DNA of 64,000 bases from IMG/VR virus record IMGVR_UViG_3300030019_000003, positions 124,001 through 188,000 of that record; one strand, given 5' to 3'. Below the pieces are notes generated by a model. It saw only the letters and a list, made by a program, of their open reading frames with translations. It was not told the origin of the DNA and did not search any database. Numbering within the stretch: the stretch's first letter is position 1; each line of letters opens with the position of its first letter. Position numbers and translations under genes: made by a program. Positions 21,315 to 63,078 of the stretch are shown piece after piece.

Positions 21315-23579
21315 ATGACCGATGGAGTAACATCATCAGGTATACCTTATAATACACTCTTTGAAGATTTTCCAAGAGTTTTAGAAGTGGATCCTGATTT
21401 AGAGGTTAGGGAGGAGTTACTAAGCTTCCATGCTATGAATGGTAGTGTTGCTGAAAACTCATCAAGTCGTATGTTTATGTACTCTGCGCATGTTGCCCAG
21501 ATGCTAGCTATTATACATGGCGAAACGTCTATATGGCAATCCGGATTAGAGTCGCAATTCTCTAAAAATACTTTCTCGTGTAAAGCTAAAAATGATTGTA
21601 CCGTTCTAAGAGTTGTTTCGCGTTATAATGGTAATAGCAGCGATTATGCCAAGGGTCTTACAGAAGTAGTAGTCTTTGTTGTTGATAATGAAACAGGTGA
21701 GATAGATTTCATTAAGGTACCCTATTACCATACGTTACATCAGTATTTTGGTTTTAAATACATGTGGAATAAGGGTATCGTTAATGATCTTACAAAAGGG
21801 CTAAGACTTAAAAAAGGTACGGTGCTAGCTGACTCACCAACAGTCGGACCTAACGATACGTATAACTATGGTGTTAATGCTAACATAGCCCTTATGAGGC
21901 TACCAGAGACCGCAGAGGATGGTGTTATCATATCAGAGTCACTTTCTAATAAGTTAGTTTATAAGATCTTTGAAAGAAGAGTTATCAATTGTGGCGCAGA
22001 AAAGATTCCTCTTAATATCTATGGTGATGAAAATGAGTATAAAGCATTTCCAGAGATAGGTCAAAAGGTTAATACAGATAGTGTACTTATGGCGGTTCGC
22101 ACCTATGATGAAGCATTAGCTCCAGCATTATTTACCAAGAAAGCATTGATGGAATATGATCCACAATTCGATGAACCTTTCTATGTAAAAGGTCCTGGAA
22201 AAGATGAAGTTATTAACGGATTTGAGGTAACCTCAGGAACTGTGGTCGATGTAATTTCCTATTTTAACCCTAAATTCAAGAAGAGTATGTTCACAGGTGT
22301 AGCAGATGATGCTACAAAATATATTAATGGTTATAAGAAATACCATGAAGATATTATTGGTGCCTATGAGGATATTAAGAAAGAATACAGATCAGTCTAC
22401 GGTGATAATAATCTTAAACTTTCTGAAAGATTACACCGACAGATTATTAACAGTTATGCTATTGCAAATCCGGATGGTAACAAGATAGGATACTGTTTTA
22501 GAAAAGACAATCTTGATATTATACGTATTGAAATTGTAGTCGAATATACCGTCAGAGCAAAGGTGGGTTCAAAAATTTCTGATATGGCTGGATCCAAAGG
22601 TGTTATAGTACAAGTTAAACCAGACCATGAGATGCCAGTGGACATCTATGGTGAAAAAGCCCAAATTTTAATGGACCCGAGTGCTGTGGTTTCACGTATG
22701 AATATGGGAAGACTATATGGTGTCTATTTTAATGCCTCATCAAGGCACACCAAGTCATTAATTACTAACTGGTTGTATGCAGAAAAAACAAATTTCCCTA
22801 CTAGTAATTTAGACGCAATTCCTATTACTAAAGATATCGTTCTTAAACCTTTAAATCAGTATTCGGATGCTGTAATAAATACTGCATTTGATATTGCTGT
22901 AGGATTTACTGCTGTGTTTGGTACAGAACAATTTGAAGGTTATAGGGCGATAACAGATAGAGCCTCTAAAGAAAATATTCTTAAAGATATTGTTACTAAA
23001 GAGTTATTTTTCTATTACAGAGCTGGTAGCAAACGTAAACGTTATCAGGTTGCGTATGGTATTGAAAGTGCTATTTATAAACCTATACGCGATAGAGTTA
23101 AGTTTATTATGTATGGTAAAGAGTATATTAGTAAAAAACCTATAAGAATAGCACCACAGTATACTATCTTGTTAGGTAAAACTGCTGATAACTTCTTATC
23201 TACAGCATCTGCTAAGACTAATCACTTTGGTCTAGGTGTTGGTATCCCTAGTCATCAGAGACATCGTAATCCGTTTAAAGATACGGCAGTTAAAAATGAA
23301 TCTGAAACTGAAGGACGCTTGTTCGTATCTTTTGCGCCACCACAGTTTGTTGCTGAAATAAACGATAGAGCTAATAAAGATATCAACCGTTATATCTACG
23401 GTAAACTATTAAGAACTCCTAAGCCTACTAATGTAGGGCAGCTTATTGATAGGTCTGTTATACCTTATGGTAATAATTCAGCATTACAAGTAATAGAGTC
23501 GGTATTTAACTGTGCCGGAGTTGGTATTTCTTATGTAAGAGACAGCGCTGTTATACATGAGAATAAAGAAGGTGTATAA
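21315..23579 (+). CDS. non-virion RNA polymerase beta subunit, C-terminal part (phiKZ gp71-73-like), uninterrupted
   Basis: GVNANIA, EDGVIISES, GSKISDMAGSKGVI, DPSAVVSRMNMGRLY beta motifs. Confidence 0.9.
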   Translation: MTDGVTSSGIPYNTLFEDFPRVLEVDPDLEVREELLSFHAMNGSVAENSSSRMFMYSAHVAQMLAIIHGETSIWQSGLESQFSKNTFSCKAKNDCTVLRVVSRYNGNSSDYAKGLTEVVVFVVDNETGEIDFIKVPYYHTLHQYFGFKYMWNKGIVNDLTKGLRLKKGTVLADSPTVGPNDTYNYGVNANIALMRLPETAEDGVIISESLSNKLVYKIFERRVINCGAEKIPLNIYGDENEYKAFPEIGQKVNTDSVLMAVRTYDEALAPALFTKKALMEYDPQFDEPFYVKGPGKDEVINGFEVTSGTVVDVISYFNPKFKKSMFTGVADDATKYINGYKKYHEDIIGAYEDIKKEYRSVYGDNNLKLSERLHRQIINSYAIANPDGNKIGYCFRKDNLDIIRIEIVVEYTVRAKVGSKISDMAGSKGVIVQVKPDHEMPVDIYGEKAQILMDPSAVVSRMNMGRLYGVYFNASSRHTKSLITNWLYAEKTNFPTSNLDAIPITKDIVLKPLNQYSDAVINTAFDIAVGFTAVFGTEQFEGYRAITDRASKENILKDIVTKELFFYYRAGSKRKRYQVAYGIESAIYKPIRDRVKFIMYGKEYISKKPIRIAPQYTILLGKTADNFLSTASAKTNHFGLGVGIPSHQRHRNPFKDTAVKNESETEGRLFVSFAPPQFVAEINDRANKDINRYIYGKLLRTPKPTNVGQLIDRSVIPYGNNSALQVIESVFNCAGVGISYVRDSAVIHENKEGV

Positions 23580-49899: not shown

Positions 49900-50691
49900 T
49901 TATAGCATCTCTTTTTTGTATGTTTTTTTAAGTTCTTCAATACCACCCCAACTGTTGTGCTTAAAATGTTGCCGTCCGTCATATTCAATAAGCAAGTTAT
50001 AATCTGGTAAATAAAAATCGTAACTATACCTGAATGGAACTATCTTGTATTGTCTAACAAATCTTATATTTTTAAAAGATAGCAATATATCTAGCTTATC
50101 CTCTCCTTTAGAATTTGTTTTACACCACGGGCAGCCAGCGCCCTGTAAATGCGAACTTGCATTTTGCTCAAAATCACCATGTTCTAAACATGTTATAATG
50201 ATCTTATTGCAATCTCCGGTATAGATTATGTTATCGTAATAATATCTTTCACCGTGTACATTTTTAGCGTCTGCTATAAATTGATCTTTAGTTTTTAATT
50301 TTAACTTACTTACATATTCCTCGCCACATTTTCTACACCCGTGACCGCTCATATGTAACTTCGGGCTTTGCATAAAATAACCGTGCTTGAAACATCTTAT
50401 TTTAACAGGGGTTACTCTATTTATAAAGTCTATTTCGGCATATCCGTATCTATCGCCGTGGGTTATTTTAGCTCTTTCTAGAAAAGATTCTTTCGTGACC
50501 TCTGTTTTCCCACCACACGTAAAACAACCTCTTCCTTGTATATGCGCGTACGCCTTTTGCTCAAAAGCGCCGTGCATGGGACATATGATTATAACTTTAT
50601 CATGTGCCCTAGTGTATATTGTTTTACTGTAGTCATATTTATTATTATGTATAAAATTAGCTCTTTTTATAAATAACTTTGTTCTATCCAA
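49900..50691 (-). CDS. free-standing endonuclease (three Zn-binding C..HG.F.Q...H..G.GC..C repeats plus PD-(D/E)xK Vsr-like domain), frameshifted near C-terminus
   Basis: YDFYLPDYNLLIEYDGRQHF; AAAGGA RBS before TTG 50691; expected tail KRDAIKN...LLRISY lies in another frame. Confidence 0.8.
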   Translation of the reverse strand: MDRTKLFIKRANFIHNNKYDYSKTIYTRAHDKVIIICPMHGAFEQKAYAHIQGRGCFTCGGKTEVTKESFLERAKITHGDRYGYAEIDFINRVTPVKIRCFKHGYFMQSPKLHMSGHGCRKCGEEYVSKLKLKTKDQFIADAKNVHGERYYYDNIIYTGDCNKIIITCLEHGDFEQNASSHLQGAGCPWCKTNSKGEDKLDILLSFKNIRFVRQYKIVPFRYSYDFYLPDYNLLIEYDGRQHFKHNSWGGIEELKKTYKKEML

Positions 50692-50725
50692 GTGAATTCC
50701 TTTCGCGTACACAGCTGTGTGTATG

Positions 50726-55072: not shown

Positions 55073-58000
55073 CTACCACGTTGTTTTTCTTTTTAAATTC
55101 ACAGCAGGTGTTCCCATATCTGTAGACATCGGTTGCTTGCTAGTATTATTAACCGGAGTATTTCCAGTCTCAGAAGTATTACCATTGTCGCTATTCATAG
55201 ACAATGTTTTATTTAATAAAGAAGCATTACTTGCAACTAACTGTTCTAGTAAATTAACCATCTTAGTTTGTGTATCTAACGATCTTGTTAATGTTCCACT
55301 AATCGTTTTAAGATTACTGTTACTATCTCCTGCTATTTCTAATTTAGCCACATCTGATTTAGCATTAAATGTCGTATCAGGTGTTTGCGTTTTATTAACA
55401 GCATCTGCTATTCCTGCTGTAGGTGAACTTGGATTAACCGTAGGAACATCTGTTATAGGAGCACTTGTATTGCCAGCAGGTTTACCAGCACCTGCGTCAC
55501 TAGGAACAGGCGGTGTACTAGAAGTAGGAGCAGTATCAGTATTATTCGTACTACTTCCTGCGTCGCTTGGTGTAGGAGTGGTTGGTCCAACTGGAGTATT
55601 GCCATTAACATCACTCGTTGTACTATTAGTATCACTTGTATTGTTAGCAGGTTGTGCACCTGGACTAAATCCATATTCAGAAGCACGCGATACTAATCTA
55701 CTCTCTAGTTCAGTATAGATCTCACTAATCGATCTGGCTCGGCCTTTACCTTTATTAGTGTAAAATATGCTATCATTGGCTTTTGCTTCTTTAGGCATCA
55801 TATCTGCGCCAATAGCATCAGGAGGGGCTTTTAAGAATTTAGTTGCTCCACCCGCTCCTAAAAAGTGTGCCAAGTATAAATCGGTAACATTAGGATTAGG
55901 CTTAACCTTCTCTATGACCTTAGCATTTTCTTTAAGGAACTCTGCTCCCATTGTAGCATTTGCTTCTGCATTAAAAGGTGAGGTTGATTTATCAATTCCA
56001 TACTTGCTACCGTATTTCTGTAACATAGTAGCCCAGGTACTATTTAAAAATTGAAATAGTCCTGATGCCGAAGAGGTTCCAGCTTTATCATTAGGATTTA
56101 ATCCCGACTCTATAGCAGCAAAAGTTTTTAATATGTTGGCATTAACACCTGTTTTTAAAGCTACCCCGTCTAACATTTCTAGAATCTTAGACTTGTCACC
56201 TTTAACAGCATTATTATTGAAACTACCTGTACTAAAAAAGTTACCAACCCCAGATTTAACAGAATCATAAGCCGAGCTAGCTTTATCAGCTATATTACTA
56301 GCGGTTTCTTTAACACTTGTTTTGGCAGAATCGTAAGCAGCCCCGGCTTTACTTTTAAAGCTAGTCATATAGTCCTTAACTTTATCATAATAGGATTGCT
56401 TATCTTTTTCTTTCTTATCCTTCTCACTTTGAGGGCTGCTAACATTATCTTTACCATTACCACCGTTAGCACCTGATGGATCTTTATACTTAACGTCTAG
56501 ATCTTCATCTGGTTTTATAGGATTGCCATTTTCGTCTAAGATAGGATCACTAGGGTCATCTATATTAAAACCAAAATAATGTTCTGTAATAGCACCTGAT
56601 AATGTTAAGTTGTCTGAAGCCATTAGTTTTGTTATAGAAAAGATGTCATAGGCTATCATAGCTTGACCTAAGAATGGTACCATTCTAGCTGTAATCTTAG
56701 CAGTCATAACGGCTGCTAGTCTACCGCCAGCAATGGTTCCTAACTTCTTAATGATTTTACCTTTTATAGATTCCATCATTGTTAATAACTTTGTAGGTTT
56801 CAGTTTTGCTAATAACCCGCCAGCCTCAGCTCCTGCTTCTCCTACTTTCAATGCAGCACCACCGGCTTCGGCTACTTTAACACCGGTGCTACCCGCTTTA
56901 CTCATAACCTCACCTGCGCCAGTTACACCTTTATAAGCACCATAAGCCCCCATGACACCACCAGCAACAGCAGTACCTGCTTTACCAGCAAAACCTAATA
57001 CACTTCCAGCACCTTTAAGTAGCCCTGGTAAGAATTTACCAAATAGTGCAGGGAGTAACTTAATAACACCCCATATACTCGCACCTATCGTAAATATTTT
57101 ACCCATAGCTCCTGTTAATAAAGGAAGAGCCATTTTTAATAAGTCAAATATACCCGAGCTATCTTTAGTAAGACCTGCTGTCTTAATAGCCGTATCTGAA
57201 GCTTTAGGTTTCTTACCAAATATTCCTAGCCTATCTCTCCAGTCTCCATCGCGCTTACCACTACCGTCTCTATCAAAGGGATTTTTGGTATCTTTATTCT
57301 TATCTTTAGTCGGCTTTTTAACTTTAGGTTCCTCTTCAGTATCATCAGGGGCATTACCTCCAAAACCTAACATAAGACTAAGAATACTTCCAATACCACC
57401 AACAGTACCTTTGGCTGCCTTGTATCCAAATTTACCTAACTTGCCAATACCTCTTAAAACAGCAGGTACCTTTCCAACAGCTTTAGGGACATTTCCTATT
57501 ATCTTTTTATCAAGCCCTCTAAGTTGTTTCATTTTATCGGACATAAGAATATTGCCAATACCCTTAGCACCTTTCCAACCATACTTAGCAGCAAAGTAAG
57601 GAATCTTAAAGGCTGTCTTAATACCTGTTTTAGCTAACCCGGCAGCACCATGGAATAATTTACTATCCAGACCACGAGCACTACTAAACGCATTCTTAAT
57701 ATTGGTTTTAGCTTGTCTTTTTCTAAAGGCCATAAAGTCTTTCTTAATATCAAAGCCTGTGTTTTCTGCCCAGGTTTTAAAATCTTTAATATACCCCGCT
57801 TGATACTCAGGACTTTTAAAGAACTCTTCTTTAAGCTGATCAACTTCTTCAGGTTTAGTAACCTTAACCTTTTTAAATTTATCTTTAGCTGCTTTAAGTA
57901 TCGGTTCTTCTTTCTTAACTTCTTCAGACTGTTCTTTTATAACGGTCTTAGTAAATTCATTCATATCGATATCTTGACTAATACCTTGAGCTTCCATCCA

Positions 58001-60463
58001 TGTTTTAAAGTCAGTAATGGTTTTATTTTTAAACTCATTACTTCCAAAAAACTCAGCACGAAAGTTTCTTAATTTGCTAAAGTCAAATTTAGGTCTATCA
58101 ATATACCTTTCTTTAATCTGTGAGAATAATCCAGTTTTTGGAGTAGTCTCTGGTTTTTTAACTTCTGGTTCAACAAGTTTCTCAATCTCATCTTGTTTAT
58201 ACCCTAATCCAGATAACCACTCTCCTAATGTTTTAGCATTGCCAAATTTATAAGCATCACTTGAGAAGAACGCCTCACGTAGGGATGTTCTGTTATTAGT
58301 ATCTGTAGCGTGTTTAGTACGTCTAGATTTTATTCTATCCAATAACCTATCACCTACAGTTGCTTGTTCTGCAACTTCTGGGCCAGTATTTAAAAATCCA
58401 CGTGCTGATTTAAGACCTTTTGTTATCTTACCATTCACAGTATTCTTTTTGGCATCTTCTTTAGCTTTAAGCTCAGCACGGTATTTTAATTCATTCTCGG
58501 TATCATAATTACTGATGTCGCCTATAGAATTTTTAAGTAACTCTTTTGTACTGTCCTGATTATACTTATAACCATCTGTACGAACATCAAACCCCATCGC
58601 ACCTAATCGTGTACCTACATCATTATATCCTAAATCATGTAGTTTACTTAAGGTAGCGTTAATATTAGGTATACCACTTTTGATACCTTTTAAATCATAA
58701 TGTATATAATCTAAATAGGAAGGATCTTCTTTGCCTTGATCAAGCATCTTAGTAATAGCAGAGGTTAGTTTATTTTTTAGTCTTCCTGTAAAGTTAACTA
58801 AAAATCTCTCTGAGACTAATGAGGATGGGGCTATAGACCCACCTGCTGTAAAATAAGACATCAAGCCTTTTTTAATACTTGTTTTCTCATTAGCACTAAG
58901 TTTAAGACCACCATCTGTTTCTAGTTTATTAATAAAACTTTCCATAGCCGGCGTAACATTTCTATTAACCGTTAATGCGATGTCTCTTTTTATATTATCA
59001 ACCATACCATCTGAGGTTGTAAACTTATTACGAGTATGATCATAATACAATTCGTGTTTATCAGGAGTTGAATCTTTTAGACGTAATGATTTAATCTCAC
59101 CGTAGATCTTACTTAATAATCCAGGTATAACCTTAACAACTGAATTCTTGGTTTTAACATCAAATTGTGCCGCATCATTAAGATTTTCAGTATTAAAATT
59201 AAGAGTATGCGTCCTATTTGGATTACTAAGATCGGCGAGTGTTCCAAAGATTCCTCTTTTAGCACCGGCAAGTAGACCATCACCTTTTGCAGAATAGGCT
59301 TGATTCTTGAAAAATTCATTAACATCCATACCCGCATTCTTAGCACCATAAACGGCTCTCTTGCCTAGATTAGTTTTACCTAGTTTATTGCCTGCTATAT
59401 TAGCCAGTTTATCTCTAGCAAACTGCCCGGCCATTTGACCAGCCATAAAACCTTTACCACCCATCATAGAGGAAGCATCATTAAGACCTTCACCCATCTC
59501 AGCCATATCACCGACACCACTTATGCCGTCTTTAAAGTTTTCAGCTGTTTCAGTAATAGTAGACATTAGGTTACGTTTTAAAGCCATCAACGGATTAATA
59601 TCAGAATAGAATAGATCTGTCACACCTTGACGTGATCTGTTCATCACAGATTCTTTTAATAACTCTGAGTTACGAGCTTTAATAACATCTGGTAATCCAG
59701 TGTTATGAATCATACTTTCAAATTGTGATTTAAAACCTATAAGACTAGATTTTAAAAGACTGAATTGTTCTTTGGCTATAAAAAGTGATTTGTACTTTAA
59801 TTCTAAATCTCTACGTTGGTATGCTGCCGTTATCTCAATATCGTATTTAAAACTTCTACCAGTATAAGATGAGATACTTGCAAGTATCTCATTAGTAGAC
59901 TTATAACGTTTTTCGTCGATACCTTCTTTAATAAGATCATCAATACGTTCTTTTTTATACTGCTCTCCGAATACTTCATTCATAGCAGTTGTAATCATTA
60001 CCGTTTCAGGATCAGGTTCATTTCTACCTCTACCTGTATCTTCAGTACCTAATTTACTTTTTATCTTTTCTATAATATTGCGTGTTAATCCAGATTTAGG
60101 GGCAATCCTATCCATTGCAGCTAAAGTGACTCTTGAAGTTTTCTTAACATCTGCAATAGAAGATTTAACTTTATCAGAAAGTTCATTATGAACAGATAGA
60201 ATATCGCTTATCTCAGAAGATAAAGATTTCGGCATCGCTTTGTTTGCTAAGTCAATTGCACCCTTAATACTAAGAGCTTCCTTACCAGCTTCTTTAAAAC
60301 CTTTTCCAACACTTTTGACAGATTTAGTAACAGCTTCTCTAGAGCCTGGTTCTGGCTCTTCAGCATCCATATCAAAAATATCGTCAAAGCCTTCTAAATC
60401 TTTCGACAGGCCTGCGTCATCGTCAATATCGAAATCTTCGATAGAGTCTTTTTTCTTCGCCAT
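55073..60463 (-). CDS. tail-associated lytic transglycosylase / tape-measure-like protein (phiKZ gp181-like)
   Basis: 1796 aa; SLT motifs AIESG, ASGLFQF, NAEANATMGAEFL, YLAHFLGAGG near C-terminus; divergent from beta-prime gene. Confidence 0.88.
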   Translation of the reverse strand: MAKKKDSIEDFDIDDDAGLSKDLEGFDDIFDMDAEEPEPGSREAVTKSVKSVGKGFKEAGKEALSIKGAIDLANKAMPKSLSSEISDILSVHNELSDKVKSSIADVKKTSRVTLAAMDRIAPKSGLTRNIIEKIKSKLGTEDTGRGRNEPDPETVMITTAMNEVFGEQYKKERIDDLIKEGIDEKRYKSTNEILASISSYTGRSFKYDIEITAAYQRRDLELKYKSLFIAKEQFSLLKSSLIGFKSQFESMIHNTGLPDVIKARNSELLKESVMNRSRQGVTDLFYSDINPLMALKRNLMSTITETAENFKDGISGVGDMAEMGEGLNDASSMMGGKGFMAGQMAGQFARDKLANIAGNKLGKTNLGKRAVYGAKNAGMDVNEFFKNQAYSAKGDGLLAGAKRGIFGTLADLSNPNRTHTLNFNTENLNDAAQFDVKTKNSVVKVIPGLLSKIYGEIKSLRLKDSTPDKHELYYDHTRNKFTTSDGMVDNIKRDIALTVNRNVTPAMESFINKLETDGGLKLSANEKTSIKKGLMSYFTAGGSIAPSSLVSERFLVNFTGRLKNKLTSAITKMLDQGKEDPSYLDYIHYDLKGIKSGIPNINATLSKLHDLGYNDVGTRLGAMGFDVRTDGYKYNQDSTKELLKNSIGDISNYDTENELKYRAELKAKEDAKKNTVNGKITKGLKSARGFLNTGPEVAEQATVGDRLLDRIKSRRTKHATDTNNRTSLREAFFSSDAYKFGNAKTLGEWLSGLGYKQDEIEKLVEPEVKKPETTPKTGLFSQIKERYIDRPKFDFSKLRNFRAEFFGSNEFKNKTITDFKTWMEAQGISQDIDMNEFTKTVIKEQSEEVKKEEPILKAAKDKFKKVKVTKPEEVDQLKEEFFKSPEYQAGYIKDFKTWAENTGFDIKKDFMAFRKRQAKTNIKNAFSSARGLDSKLFHGAAGLAKTGIKTAFKIPYFAAKYGWKGAKGIGNILMSDKMKQLRGLDKKIIGNVPKAVGKVPAVLRGIGKLGKFGYKAAKGTVGGIGSILSLMLGFGGNAPDDTEEEPKVKKPTKDKNKDTKNPFDRDGSGKRDGDWRDRLGIFGKKPKASDTAIKTAGLTKDSSGIFDLLKMALPLLTGAMGKIFTIGASIWGVIKLLPALFGKFLPGLLKGAGSVLGFAGKAGTAVAGGVMGAYGAYKGVTGAGEVMSKAGSTGVKVAEAGGAALKVGEAGAEAGGLLAKLKPTKLLTMMESIKGKIIKKLGTIAGGRLAAVMTAKITARMVPFLGQAMIAYDIFSITKLMASDNLTLSGAITEHYFGFNIDDPSDPILDENGNPIKPDEDLDVKYKDPSGANGGNGKDNVSSPQSEKDKKEKDKQSYYDKVKDYMTSFKSKAGAAYDSAKTSVKETASNIADKASSAYDSVKSGVGNFFSTGSFNNNAVKGDKSKILEMLDGVALKTGVNANILKTFAAIESGLNPNDKAGTSSASGLFQFLNSTWATMLQKYGSKYGIDKSTSPFNAEANATMGAEFLKENAKVIEKVKPNPNVTDLYLAHFLGAGGATKFLKAPPDAIGADMMPKEAKANDSIFYTNKGKGRARSISEIYTELESRLVSRASEYGFSPGAQPANNTSDTNSTTSDVNGNTPVGPTTPTPSDAGSSTNNTDTAPTSSTPPVPSDAGAGKPAGNTSAPITDVPTVNPSSPTAGIADAVNKTQTPDTTFNAKSDVAKLEIAGDSNSNLKTISGTLTRSLDTQTKMVNLLEQLVASNASLLNKTLSMNSDNGNTSETGNTPVNNTSKQPMSTDMGTPAVNLKRKTTW

Positions 60464-60523
60464 ATGACCTCCTTAATTTCTGTGTACATGATTCCATGAA
60501 TATTAACTTAATATCAAGGAAAC

Positions 60524-62656
60524 GTGATGATATTACAGAGATTTATAAAGAATCCCAGCACATTTAACATAGAACTACTATTAGTTTTGACTCCTGAAAA
60601 CTCTAGGATGTTGAAAGAAGTAAAGAAACCTACTATATTTGAACCTAATACGCAAGTGTTTGATAAAGAAGGATTATTTTCTACAGAAATATTTGGTCCA
60701 GTTGGATCTACTATGCGTAAAGTTTTACCGGGCTATATTGATTTAGGGGTATCTGTTATTCACCCTGAGATATATGATTCTATATCACAACTTGGATCAA
60801 TTTACGCTAGCATCATGTCAGGTGAACAAAGAGTAAGATACAATAAGATTACACGTAACTTTGATCCTGTCACAGATGAGGAAGAAGGACAAACAGGTTA
60901 TAAGTATTTTCTAGATCATTACTTCGCAGGTAAGATTTCTTTTATGGAGAATGATAGTAGTAAGCGACAGTATAACTTAAAAATAGTTGAAAACGGAATG
61001 GATGTTACCAAAACGATTACTAAAATGATCGTGTTGCCAGCAGGACTTAGAGATTATACCATTAACAAGTCTGGAAGGGGTGAAGAAGACGAAGTTAATA
61101 CTCTCTATAGAAAAGTACTCGCCATTACGAGTATGGTTAAAAACACCACTCTAGATGATGATAACTTAGCACTACTTGATCCGATGCGTTTTAGATTACA
61201 GATGGCGTTTAACGAGATCTATAATCACTTTGCCGATCTTATGGATGGTAAGAATAAATTCTTACAAAGTAAATTTTCAAAACGTGCTATCATGTTTGGT
61301 ACACGTAATGTTATTACATCAACACCTAACTATATTACAGATTTAAAATCTCCGACCAAAACAGGTGTGAACCATACGATTGTTGGTATTTATCAATTTA
61401 TAAAAAGTATAACACCTATTGCTGCTAATAAGGTTATTAACATTTTTATTAGTCGATTTATGAACCCAACAACTAACACGGCAATATTAGTTAACCCCAA
61501 AACAATGAAAACTGAAATTGTTGATATTCCTGTTAAAAAGAGAGATGACTGGATATCGTTAGACGGATTAAATAATCTGTTTAATAAATTTGCACAAGAT
61601 AGTTTTAAAAGTTTACCTGTTAAGATTAATGGTTATTATCTTATGCTAATTTACGATGACGGTAAAAATGTTAAGTACTATTTTAACACCGATGATATTG
61701 ATGAAAAAACAGATAGAAAGTATATCAGGCCTATTACCTATATTGAGCTTGTTTACATGGCGATATACGATGTTAAAGATAAATACCCAGCATTCTTAAC
61801 ACGTTATCCTGTCGCTGCTCTGGGCGGTATCTATCCAAGTTATCAATACGTTAAAACAACTATAAACGGTAGAACTGTTAACTTTAGTATGGACAACATT
61901 TCTAAAACAGTTTATGAGTATCCTAAACTAGGTGATGAGTACGTTAACTCTATGTCAATTTCACAATACCATCTAAAGCGAGCTGGCGCAGATTATGATG
62001 GCGATATGATGAGCAGTAATGGGCTATTAACAGCAGAGTCTATAGCTGAAGTAAAAAGGATTCTTAATACAAAAGAATACTATATTACTCCAGACGGTGA
62101 AGCTACCTATACTATAGCTACAGATACTTTAGAATATGTTATGGCTCATTTATCAGATACTAGTCTATTATCTAAGGTATATCAATTTCAAGAGCTAACA
62201 GATTTCATACCTGTTGATAAACTTTGCACCGCTTTAACAAAAATTTATAATACTTCTTTTGGTCATAATGAAACTGTAGAAACATTTAAAAAATGGTTAG
62301 AGACACGAATATACCGAGAAGGTGATGAAGTTGATGTTGTTGCTAATGGTAAAGGTGATATATACGGATATGGTAGATACCGAGAATTTAATAAAGGTAC
62401 AGAGATTTACTCACCTCTTTCTAAAACTAAGAGATATGGTTTTATTTCAGATCTAGCCAGTGTTGTTAAAGGAACTGGTACTAAGATACTAAACCATATA
62501 TTAACCGAAGTAGATACTAAGAAAATAGATGTGATGCTTTTAGCTAGAACTGAAAGTCTTATACCTTACTATGAGAAATTTGGATTTAAAGTTGTTGATG
62601 CTAAAGGTGTCAATGTAAAGATAACTAAACCTTTGATGGTGAGGTACGCACAGTAA
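60524..62656 (+). CDS. virion RNA polymerase beta-prime catalytic subunit (phiKZ gp180-like) fused to a C-terminal GNAT-like domain
   Basis: GLFSTEIFG, LPAGLRD, GTRNVIT, RYP and catalytic ADYDGD (61988-62005); extra ~165 aa with KGTGTKIL and YYEKFGF. Confidence 0.9.
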   Translation: MMILQRFIKNPSTFNIELLLVLTPENSRMLKEVKKPTIFEPNTQVFDKEGLFSTEIFGPVGSTMRKVLPGYIDLGVSVIHPEIYDSISQLGSIYASIMSGEQRVRYNKITRNFDPVTDEEEGQTGYKYFLDHYFAGKISFMENDSSKRQYNLKIVENGMDVTKTITKMIVLPAGLRDYTINKSGRGEEDEVNTLYRKVLAITSMVKNTTLDDDNLALLDPMRFRLQMAFNEIYNHFADLMDGKNKFLQSKFSKRAIMFGTRNVITSTPNYITDLKSPTKTGVNHTIVGIYQFIKSITPIAANKVINIFISRFMNPTTNTAILVNPKTMKTEIVDIPVKKRDDWISLDGLNNLFNKFAQDSFKSLPVKINGYYLMLIYDDGKNVKYYFNTDDIDEKTDRKYIRPITYIELVYMAIYDVKDKYPAFLTRYPVAALGGIYPSYQYVKTTINGRTVNFSMDNISKTVYEYPKLGDEYVNSMSISQYHLKRAGADYDGDMMSSNGLLTAESIAEVKRILNTKEYYITPDGEATYTIATDTLEYVMAHLSDTSLLSKVYQFQELTDFIPVDKLCTALTKIYNTSFGHNETVETFKKWLETRIYREGDEVDVVANGKGDIYGYGRYREFNKGTEIYSPLSKTKRYGFISDLASVVKGTGTKILNHILTEVDTKKIDVMLLARTESLIPYYEKFGFKVVDAKGVNVKITKPLMVRYAQ

Positions 62657-63078
62657 TGGCAACGTTAGTAGAAATTGACAAACTTGATGTTAAATTTCTA
62701 AACAACCTTGATAGTGAACGTTTTGATAGGAGATATGCCTGTAACGATAGCGGACAAGTCTATTTGATTAAACAAGATGGTGGGAAGACATGGGTTGCGC
62801 AACCCATGTCACCCTTTGTCACTCGCGATGGTTATGTAGAATATGTTTTAACGTCTATAACTAAAAGAAAGATACATATACAGGCGCAACGTATCGTTGC
62901 TGGGTTATATTGTAAAAAGAAACCTGGTTGTAATTATGTTAATCATAAGAATGGTATTCGTTACGATAACCACTATAAGAATTTAGAGTGGGTTACCCAA
63001 TCTGATAATATTAAACATTCTTATAGAGTTTTAAGAACACGCTGGAATAGTAAAGCCAGTAAGTTTGAATTGTATTAA
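62656..63078 (+). CDS. HNH homing endonuclease (HNH_3/NUMOD4-type)
   Basis: QAQRIVA, VNHKNGIRYDNHYKNLEWVTQSDNIKH; TAATG coupling to RNAP stop. Confidence 0.85.
   Translation: MATLVEIDKLDVKFLNNLDSERFDRRYACNDSGQVYLIKQDGGKTWVAQPMSPFVTRDGYVEYVLTSITKRKIHIQAQRIVAGLYCKKKPGCNYVNHKNGIRYDNHYKNLEWVTQSDNIKHSYRVLRTRWNSKASKFELY

Follow-up and report, generated by a model that had tools for sequence, protein, structure and literature searches.

Introduction

The ADP-ribosyltransferase Alt of phage T4 and the giant virion RNA polymerase (vRNAP) of phage N4 are precedents for phage enzymes that are delivered to the host with the virion. In phiKZ the virion contains about ten copies of a vRNAP whose gp180 subunit bears the Mg2+-binding loop DFDGD (PMC10612078). 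An mCherry-gp180 fusion was assembled into the phiKZ vRNAP, packaged and injected, while newly made gp180 was found in the cytoplasm at ~3000 copies per cell (PMC10612078). Here we describe a gene in which the reading frame of a gp180-type subunit continues without interruption into a predicted GNAT-fold acyl-CoA N-acyltransferase domain. The gene lies at 60524..62656 (+ strand) of a 64,000-nucleotide stretch of DNA, hereafter the window, that corresponds to positions 124,001 to 188,000 of the IMG/VR virus record IMGVR_UViG_3300030019_000003.

Two further groups of phage proteins are relevant to this architecture. Stand-alone GNATs are common in jumbo phages and are predicted to modify host proteins such as RNA polymerase (RNAP) in a Rac-like manner (Iyer et al. 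2021, PMC7824862; review PMC13282480). Rac, the gp28 protein of LUZ19, indicates that a phage GNAT is able to act on host transcription (PMC7552054). GNAT is also a recurrent domain in polyvalent phage proteins, which are injected (Iyer et al. 2017, PMC5512222).

The gene described here shares features with each of these systems and differs from all of them. Its product is homologous to phiKZ gp180, PhiPA3 gp212 and 201phi2-1 gp275 over residues 13-545, including the D-x-D-G-D loop, and the gene has the same divergent synteny with a gp181-type gene. However, the known gp180 members contain ~540-550 amino acids (aa) and end in ...L(S/T)GD, whereas the fusion continues for 165 residues as a GNAT. 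This tail corresponds to a full-length member of a family of mostly stand-alone phage GNATs (P0002-P0029), none of which is joined to an RNAP. Unlike the stand-alone proteins, the GNAT of the fusion lacks a separate start codon and is covalently attached to the RNAP subunit. Polyvalent proteins consist of arrays of 2-15 conflict domains and are typically encoded beside portal or head genes (PMC5512222), whereas the fusion places one GNAT on an RNAP subunit. The GNAT-RNAP architecture is not listed among the polyvalent proteins (PMC5512222), and the carrier in the two-module fusion is an essential RNAP subunit. The logic would nevertheless be alike, i.e. an enzymatic effector carried on a packaged and injected protein, with delivery predicted in the case of the fusion. 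Rac resembles the fusion in that it is a phage GNAT tied to transcription takeover and encoded downstream of the phage's own RNAP gene; however, it is a separate early/middle protein, and the LUZ19 RNAP is a single-subunit enzyme that is not virion-borne. In the Pseudomonas phage LUZ19 (L099:6664-10008) the gene for Rac gp28, which acts on the alpha subunit of host RNAP, is two genes downstream of the RNAP gene gp26. A specific kinship of the tail with Rac was rejected, as hhalign of the family profile against gp28 returned a probability of 0.2% and an E of 0.25. We regard the fusion as a putative virion-delivered effector domain, which is a known idea, on what appears to be an unprecedented carrier.

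A gp180-type vRNAP subunit continues in frame into a predicted GNAT domain

The gene consists of a single continuous frame of 710 codons on the + strand. Its features are as follows.

60524..62656, + strand: whole fusion gene, 710 aa from GTG at 60524, with the stop codon TAA at 62654-62656
60524..62158, + strand: predicted vRNAP beta-prime N-terminal-like module, residues 1-545, phiKZ gp180/PhiPA3 gp212 orthologue (phrog_2986, tblastn, alignment)
61991..62005, + strand: catalytic Mg2+-binding loop DYDGD, residues 490-494, a Tyr variant of DFDGD (alignment, variant counts)
62159..62173, + strand: five-residue linker TSLLS, residues 546-550, from the RNAP C-terminus to GNAT strand beta1 (alignment, AlphaFold2 model)
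62174..62653, + strand: predicted complete GNAT-fold acyl-CoA N-acyltransferase domain, residues 551-710 (AlphaFold2, Foldseek, BFVD, family hidden Markov model (HMM))
62441..62491, + strand: GNAT motif A, beta4 and the pyrophosphate-binding loop, FISDLASVVKGTGTKIL, residues 640-656
62558..62596, + strand: GNAT motif B, helix alpha4, LIPYYEKFGFKVV, residues 679-691

Residues are numbered from GTG 60524 throughout. The alternative start codon ATG 60527 would yield a protein of 709 aa and is the start called for the identical public protein P0001; the Shine-Dalgarno sequence AAGG at 60517-60520 is better spaced for this ATG than for the GTG. The segment singled out in the initial annotation (62160..62656) corresponds to the tail and the stop codon. 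The source phage is uncultivated and is represented by contigs of 252 kb and 150 kb from peat metagenomes. As the window also codes for a phiKZ-type major head protein, an RNAP beta-like subunit, a DnaB-like helicase and virion structural proteins, we assign the fusion gene by sequence to an uncultivated phiKZ-like jumbo phage of peat.

The N-terminal module was identified by homology. The profile phrog_2986 ('RNA polymerase beta subunit') matched residues 13-543 over 531 of its 539 model positions (E 1.2e-150), whereas the match to phrog_2987, which we take to be the gp55-type non-virion paralogue family, was weak (E 0.0016). When 50,697 phage records were searched by tblastn, the module matched 311 genomes at <=36% identity, including those of Pseudomonas, Erwinia, Ralstonia, Salmonella, Vibrio and other jumbo phages. 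Matches were essentially limited to a single place per phage genome (313 places in 311 records). The records that were inspected had at this place the gp180-type gene, annotated as a homologue of phiKZ gp180 or PhiPA3 gp212, and not the non-virion paralogue. The PhiPA3 gp212 record itself is annotated 'similar to gp180 phiKZ'. The module was 34-36% identical to the RP31 and RP12 proteins and to PhiPA3 gp212. Four aligned orthologues stop at ...L(S/T)GD, which corresponds to residue 545 of the window protein, and it is at this residue that YVMAHLSD ends in the fusion. On the basis of the phrog_2986 homology, the single tblastn place and the gp181-type synteny, we assign the module to the gp180-type, catalytic-loop-bearing vRNAP subunits. 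The initial annotation had called the protein a virion RNAP catalytic subunit that continues in frame for ~165 aa past YVMAHLSD at about residue 545; the profile match and synteny bear out the first point, and the ends of the orthologues in the alignment bear out the second.

The three Asp residues of the D-x-D-G-D loop were invariant in the orthologue alignment. It had also been remarked that the loop reads DYDGD instead of DFDGD. While this substitution is present, it is not noteworthy, since 9 of the 73 gp180 orthologue loci in the L020-L098 set share it (DFDGD, 62; DYDGD, 9; DHDGD, 2). DYDGD is a recurrent minority clade variant and is unremarkable.

The tail is predicted to be a complete GNAT domain

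The tail extends 165 residues in frame past the canonical RNAP end. A single-sequence AlphaFold prediction of this segment was uninformative, with a predicted local distance difference test score (pLDDT) of 37, and was replaced by an AlphaFold2 prediction from a 26-sequence alignment, which gave a mean pLDDT of 93.7 and a predicted template-modelling score (pTM) of 0.88. The topology of the model, b1-a1-a2-b2-b3-b4-a3-b5-a4-b6-b7, is the canonical GNAT order (tail elements E9-12, H22-37, H43-56, E60-65, E71-81, E95-104, H109-124, E127-131, H135-142 and E162-165, with an extra two-residue strand at ~147-148). Foldseek matched the model to 312 PDB chains at E<=1e-3; among the top matches listed nearly all were GNATs (NatD, GCN5, Naa60, YhbS and Ard1 among them), with template-modelling scores of ~0.6. 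In BFVD, viral acetyltransferases ranked highest, and these included the proteins of the Erwinia phages PhiEaH1 and RAY. Generic GNAT clusters came up in the ESM Atlas at 0.90-0.92, a supportive but unspecific result, and an NCBIfam scan of the tail gave no meaningful match.

In a phmmer search of the PDB sequences, the tail segment GTGTKILNHIL...LIPYYEKFGFKVV aligned to motifs A and B of Naa50, and the family profile matched PaiA, GCN5 and Naa50. The consensus of GNAT motif A is Q/R-x-x-G-x-G/A between b4 and a3, and motif B contains a Tyr, the general acid, followed by G-F. In the tail the motif A loop is V647-V-K-G650-T-G652, aligned to RRLGIG of Naa50, and motif B is LIPY682Y683EKFGF, aligned to DFYRKFGF. 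The Tyr of the latter sequence, presumably the general acid of Naa50, aligns with Y682 or Y683. Residues G652, Y682 and Y683 were invariant in the family, and G650, L679, G687 and F688 were nearly so. Because the glycines of the pyrophosphate loop and the tyrosines of motif B are conserved, binding of the coenzyme A (CoA) cofactor looks retained. The tail is probably a catalytically competent acyl-CoA N-acyltransferase. The AlphaFold2 model and the Foldseek matches are decisive for the fold, and from the model we conclude that the tail is a complete GNAT domain with motifs A and B. The GNAT-like motif sequences quoted in the initial annotation are both present, and fold prediction and Foldseek agree with the proposed domain.

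The tail belongs to a family of small phage GNATs

An exhaustive HMMER search of 1.84 billion representatives recovered 26 relatives of the tail (E 2e-13 to 5e-4). The majority, of 145-210 aa, stand alone and six are longer, multi-domain or repeat proteins; none is an RNAP. The family (P0002-P0029) is 24-43% identical to the tail and only ~28% identical overall. In the alignment, the stand-alone relatives begin with their own N-terminus near tail residue 10 and extend to the C-terminus, and positions 5-162 of the family HMM align to residues 545-709 of the fusion. Tail and relatives share the motifs SDLASxxKGxG and LIPYYEKFGFK. Pfam GNAT models matched 9 of 20 aligned family sequences, i.e. 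19 relatives and the tail, with a best E of 3e-8; PF00583 or PF13673 is precomputed for P0027, P0028, P0029 and P0019. A profile search for tail relatives added only 2 further sequences.

Two long proteins, P0011 (663 aa) and P0026 (1038 aa), contain 12 and 6 stretches, respectively, that match the motif A/alpha3 region of the tail; a GNAT fragment may have been multiplied to form these proteins, or the matches may be due to low complexity. P0003 is encoded in an unrelated phage beside DprA-like and topoisomerase II genes. At locus L008, where a 561-aa gene lies two genes upstream of a stand-alone GNAT, synteny with an RNAP gene was considered and rejected, as that gene is not an RNAP.

The junction between the two modules is genuine

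The apparent fusion could be an artefact in which adjacent gp180 and GNAT genes were merged by a sequencing or assembly error or in a chimeric contig. We considered this solely on account of the metagenomic origin of the DNA, and no observation spoke for it. However, an identical 709-aa product was encoded on 7 contigs from 6 JGI/ENA metagenome samples that were assembled independently, and Logan contigs from two further peat runs spanned the junction with 0 differences and 0 gaps (X3, 61841-62538; X4, 62115-62740). A stop codon between the domains, which would have separated the GNAT envisaged by the initial annotation from the RNAP, was absent from all 7 contigs and both Logan runs. GC content was even over the RNAP part, the tail and the flanks (0.29-0.38), without a compositional break; with GC uniform through the junction, a recent foreign insertion was not supported either. 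No in-frame ATG, GTG or TTG occurs between residues 541 and 639. The lack of an in-frame start codon at the junction argues against two merged genes, and the GNAT is therefore not translatable separately from the RNAP subunit. We conclude that the junction is genuine and not an assembly error; the artefact explanation is effectively refuted, and we assign it a negligible probability.

We also considered proteolytic removal of the tail. The prohead protease of the related giant phage SPN3US cuts after A-X-E, and its identified cleavages, bar self-cleavage, all remove N-terminal propeptides (PMC10052503). As no [S/A/G]-x-E prohead-protease motif was present between residues 480 and 599 of the fusion, and as the SPN3US cleavages are N-terminal, cleavage of the tail is less likely.

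The fusion appears unique to one lineage, but other domains occupy the same terminus

We measured the run-on of the open reading frame (ORF) at 79 IMG/VR orthologue loci, or 77 after leaving out two copies of this phage. Seventy-three of the 77 other gp180 loci end within ~20 residues of the canonical point or are interrupted earlier, and 4 carry unrelated extensions of ~125-135 aa. The GNAT tail was absent from all 77, also within 3 kb. In the 50,697 phage records, tblastn with the fusion gave no coverage past residue 559, and neither tblastn with the tail alone nor megablast with the whole gene gave a match. In a collection of 5.8 billion protein clusters, this protein was the only one of fusion length with the tail, and a word-indexed protein search with the tail alone found nothing. 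Single-sequence scans of viral and metagenome contigs returned only this phage and weak GNAT matches, with no diverged copy of the fusion. The literature searched yielded no report of a multisubunit RNAP with a GNAT fused to one of its subunits. An RNAP-GNAT fusion had been unfamiliar to the initial annotation as well; neither the orthologue survey nor the collections supplied a second case, and the fusion appears unique to this lineage among the collections searched.

The gp180 orthologue of the Ralstonia phages RP12 and RP31 (ORF039, 664 aa) carries an enzymatic-looking domain of another fold family at exactly the same C-terminal position, and tblastn with the tail detected no similarity between this extension and the GNAT. 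The same type of ParB/Srx-like extension, of ~125-135 aa, was present in two uncultivated relatives (L073 and L033). The extensions are as follows.

L011:10594-10971: ParB/Srx-like extension (RP31 ORF039)
L052: ParB/Srx-like extension
L073:4594-5001: ParB/Srx-like extension
L033:4594-4983: ParB/Srx-like extension
L061:4588-4965: 126-aa extension with no type assigned (…PLAIIITGNPKYLKK…), unlike the GNAT and the ParB-like ones

The ParB/Srx-like extension contains the motif DGNHR or DGLHR and scored 20.6 bits against Pfam ParBc_2, which is under the cut-off. Judged by sequence, it is an independent addition at the same gp180 terminus. Because unrelated domains have been appended there in the RP12/RP31 group and in L061, the gp180 C-terminus appears to tolerate the addition of domains.

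Proposed function of the tethered GNAT

Because the GNAT is made only as part of the RNAP subunit, it is expected to be present in the vRNAP, in the virion and in the injected material. The reading that we favour, with moderate confidence, is that a catalytic-loop vRNAP subunit with a tethered GNAT is packaged and injected as a pre-made effector, which most likely acetylates protein amino groups. By analogy with phiKZ, the subunit with its tail would be built into the vRNAP, packaged at about ten copies and injected with the DNA, and the GNAT would probably enter the host cell together with it. The injected GNAT would act before phage genes are expressed. Its targets would most likely be protein amino groups at the site of entry and early transcription, on host proteins or on co-injected phage proteins. 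A second, far larger pool of the enzyme would arise late in infection from the cytoplasmic subunit synthesized at that stage. A protein amine is our best guess for the substrate because protein N-acetyltransferases (NatD, GCN5, Naa50, Naa60) predominate among the structural and profile neighbours, which is weak evidence at 9-19% identity.

Several observations weigh against this reading. Five Pfam GNAT models match the tail (E 1e-4 to 3e-2), but its scores are all slightly under the Pfam gathering scores (Acetyltransf_10, 22.3 vs 23.6 bits; Acetyltransf_1, 18.3 vs 20.7 bits); despite these sub-threshold scores the tail is a divergent member of the GNATs. The first position of motif A is Val rather than the usual Gln or Arg. 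The position aligned to what we take to be the catalytic Glu of GCN5 is Arg, and alignment to GCN5 and Naa50 yields no general base. All copies of the fusion are 100% identical, and selection on it is not demonstrable for this reason. The mCherry tag that was injected in phiKZ was N-terminal on gp180 (PMC10612078), whereas the cargo here is C-terminal. Finally, the injected phiKZ vRNAP stays with the DNA in an early compartment and is kept out of the nucleus (PMC10612078), and it is uncertain whether an injected GNAT would reach host cytoplasmic proteins and acetyl-CoA. Co-injected proteins, the polymerase itself, polyamines and nascent RNA are therefore live alternative substrates.

The atypical first residue of motif A and the lack of an identified general base would fit a GNAT that is dead or has been exapted as a packaging signal, a docking site or a sensor of CoA or nucleotides, or that results from a recent, near-neutral fusion accident. 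Its restriction to a single phage lineage with identical copies, where selection is unproven, would also fit, as would the tolerance of the gp180 terminus for unrelated add-ons (RP12/RP31, L073 and L033; L061). However, the GxG and Tyr-Tyr residues have been kept in a family that is so divergent overall, and the fold is predicted at very high confidence with no degenerate elements. We consider a dead or exapted GNAT very unlikely.

Confinement of the injected polymerase is also relevant to the possibility that the GNAT serves the phage's own machinery. Its substrates would then be the vRNAP itself or head or ejection proteins packaged along with it, acetylated in the producer cell prior to packaging or in the early compartment, and the modification would regulate vRNAP activity, packaging or the early-to-late switch. 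The 5-residue tether favours nearby substrates, and a stand-alone member of the GNAT family in the relative L009 lies between vRNAP subunit genes. Both locations of the phiKZ protein would suit such a role, the injected vRNAP remaining with the DNA and new gp180 being cytoplasmic (PMC10612078). A general need of this kind would, however, predict that a GNAT accompanies gp180 widely, whereas 77 of 77 other loci are without one within 3 kb. We regard a role in the phage's own machinery as rather unlikely.

The substrate might instead be something other than a protein, such as co-packaged polyamines, aminoacyl-tRNA, which GNAT toxins modify, a nucleotide-derived defence signal, the nascent transcript or the initiating nucleotide. 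The best full-length PDB profile match of the family was B. subtilis PaiA (1tiq, E 1.7e-5), which we take to be a spermidine/spermine acetyltransferase. The Foldseek matches included an entry of GNAT fold with the title 'bacterial toxin' (7byy), and the RNAP tether would put the active site near nascent RNA and nucleoside triphosphates. On the other hand, the predominance of protein N-acetyltransferases among the top structural and profile neighbours runs counter to a non-protein substrate, although at such identities specificity is unreadable from neighbours in either direction, and a translation block via aminoacyl-tRNA would harm the phage too. A non-protein substrate is unlikely in our judgement. 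Highly improbable is the specific version in which the GNAT, held by its 5-residue tether near an opening of the injected polymerase, co-transcriptionally acylates nascent early transcripts, the initiating nucleotide or a host defence signal of the nucleotide type. If true, early phage RNA would be chemically marked or host sensing blunted from the first seconds, and modification of RNA or nucleotides by an acyltransferase would be built into a polymerase.

Neighbouring genes and origin of the fusion

The fusion gene is flanked by the following genes.

55073..60463, - strand: upstream neighbour, 1796-aa gp181-type tail/transglycosylase protein (phrog_3201, E 4e-113; phrog_4067; Pfam SLT)
62656..63078, + strand: downstream neighbour, 140-aa HNH-like gene (Pfam HNH_3, 25.2 bits; phrog_59, phrog_959)

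The gp181-type gene is divergent to the gp180-type gene in PhiPA3, RP31, L022, L027 and L025, as it is in the window. The ATG of the HNH-like gene overlaps the stop codon of the fusion gene by one base. In the closest complete relatives (L022, L027 and L025), whose RNAP is 44-48% identical, the order is gp181-like (-), gp180-like (+), HNH-like, without a GNAT. The HNH-like orthologues are 49-50% identical to the product of 62656..63078. They contain ~137 aa in L022 and L027, and in L027 the gene begins 4 bases past the gp180 stop; in L025 the gene is 132 aa and farther downstream, after an interrupting ORF. As the HNH-like gene is conserved after gp180 in these three relatives, it is an old neighbour, and the GNAT sits exactly between two conserved neighbours. 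We rejected the HNH gene as a mobile element that imported the GNAT, since it is a conserved neighbour in relatives without the GNAT; one possibility is a domesticated HNH protein with a link to the vRNAP gene.

The simplest history would be that a gp180 orthologue acquired a stand-alone phage GNAT gene at its 3' end. In the fusion step, the stop codon of the former and the start codon of the latter would both have been lost, leaving the 5 linker residues.

A stand-alone GNAT is encoded near vRNAP genes in one relative. L022 and L009 are the same 205-kb contig, and at L009:4420-10468 the stand-alone GNAT P0018 is one gene (phrog_3179/DUF7484) away from a 1568-aa vRNAP beta-like gene (phrog_3148), ~10 kb from the gp180 orthologue of the same phage. 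This position is a loose GNAT-vRNAP neighbourhood link. The L009 genome also encodes an S80 prohead protease, a protein with a faint tubulin-like Pfam match and a divergent DNA polymerase.

As for other vRNAP subunits, a 754-aa RNAP beta-like subunit is encoded in the window at 21315..23579 (+ strand; phrog_3295, E 1e-157), ~37 kb upstream of the fusion. The gene for a gp178-type subunit directly follows gp180 in PhiPA3 and RP31, and does not do so in this phage or its closest relatives.

Interrupted gp180 orthologues

The gp180 orthologues of L014 (=L023), L024, L026, L079, L025 and L032 are interrupted at or just past the catalytic loop. In L014 (3971-6935) the first part ends in GADYDGDEC followed by a stop codon and then by a 480-aa homing-endonuclease ORF with HNH_3 and NUMOD1 domains, an arrangement suggestive of an intron, or of a split gene, at the most conserved site. 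L014 is the closest relative (RNAP 50% identical), and its available sequence ends before the 3' part of gp180. A 421-aa ORF interrupts or follows the gp180 orthologue at L025:4462-5727; two segments of it share 34-39% identity with a 270-aa ORF at 49900..50712 (- strand) of the window, and this phage probably contains the same endonuclease-like family elsewhere.

Implications

As phiKZ-type phages inject their own multisubunit RNAP, the fusion bears on what rides in with this enzyme and on how the first minutes of infection are secured. The fusion would be a natural example of the vRNAP as an effector delivery vehicle, paralleling T4 Alt and the polyvalent proteins, but with a multisubunit polymerase as the carrier. 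Together with the additions in RP12 and RP31, it suggests that the gp180 C-terminus is a permissive, surface-exposed cargo site. Such a site would be useful for engineering virion-delivered payloads in phages kept as laboratory systems and for locating the gp180 terminus in the structure of the vRNAP, which to our knowledge is still unsolved. The tail may also offer a tractable way of finding out what the small phage GNATs, a widespread but uncharacterised family, modify.

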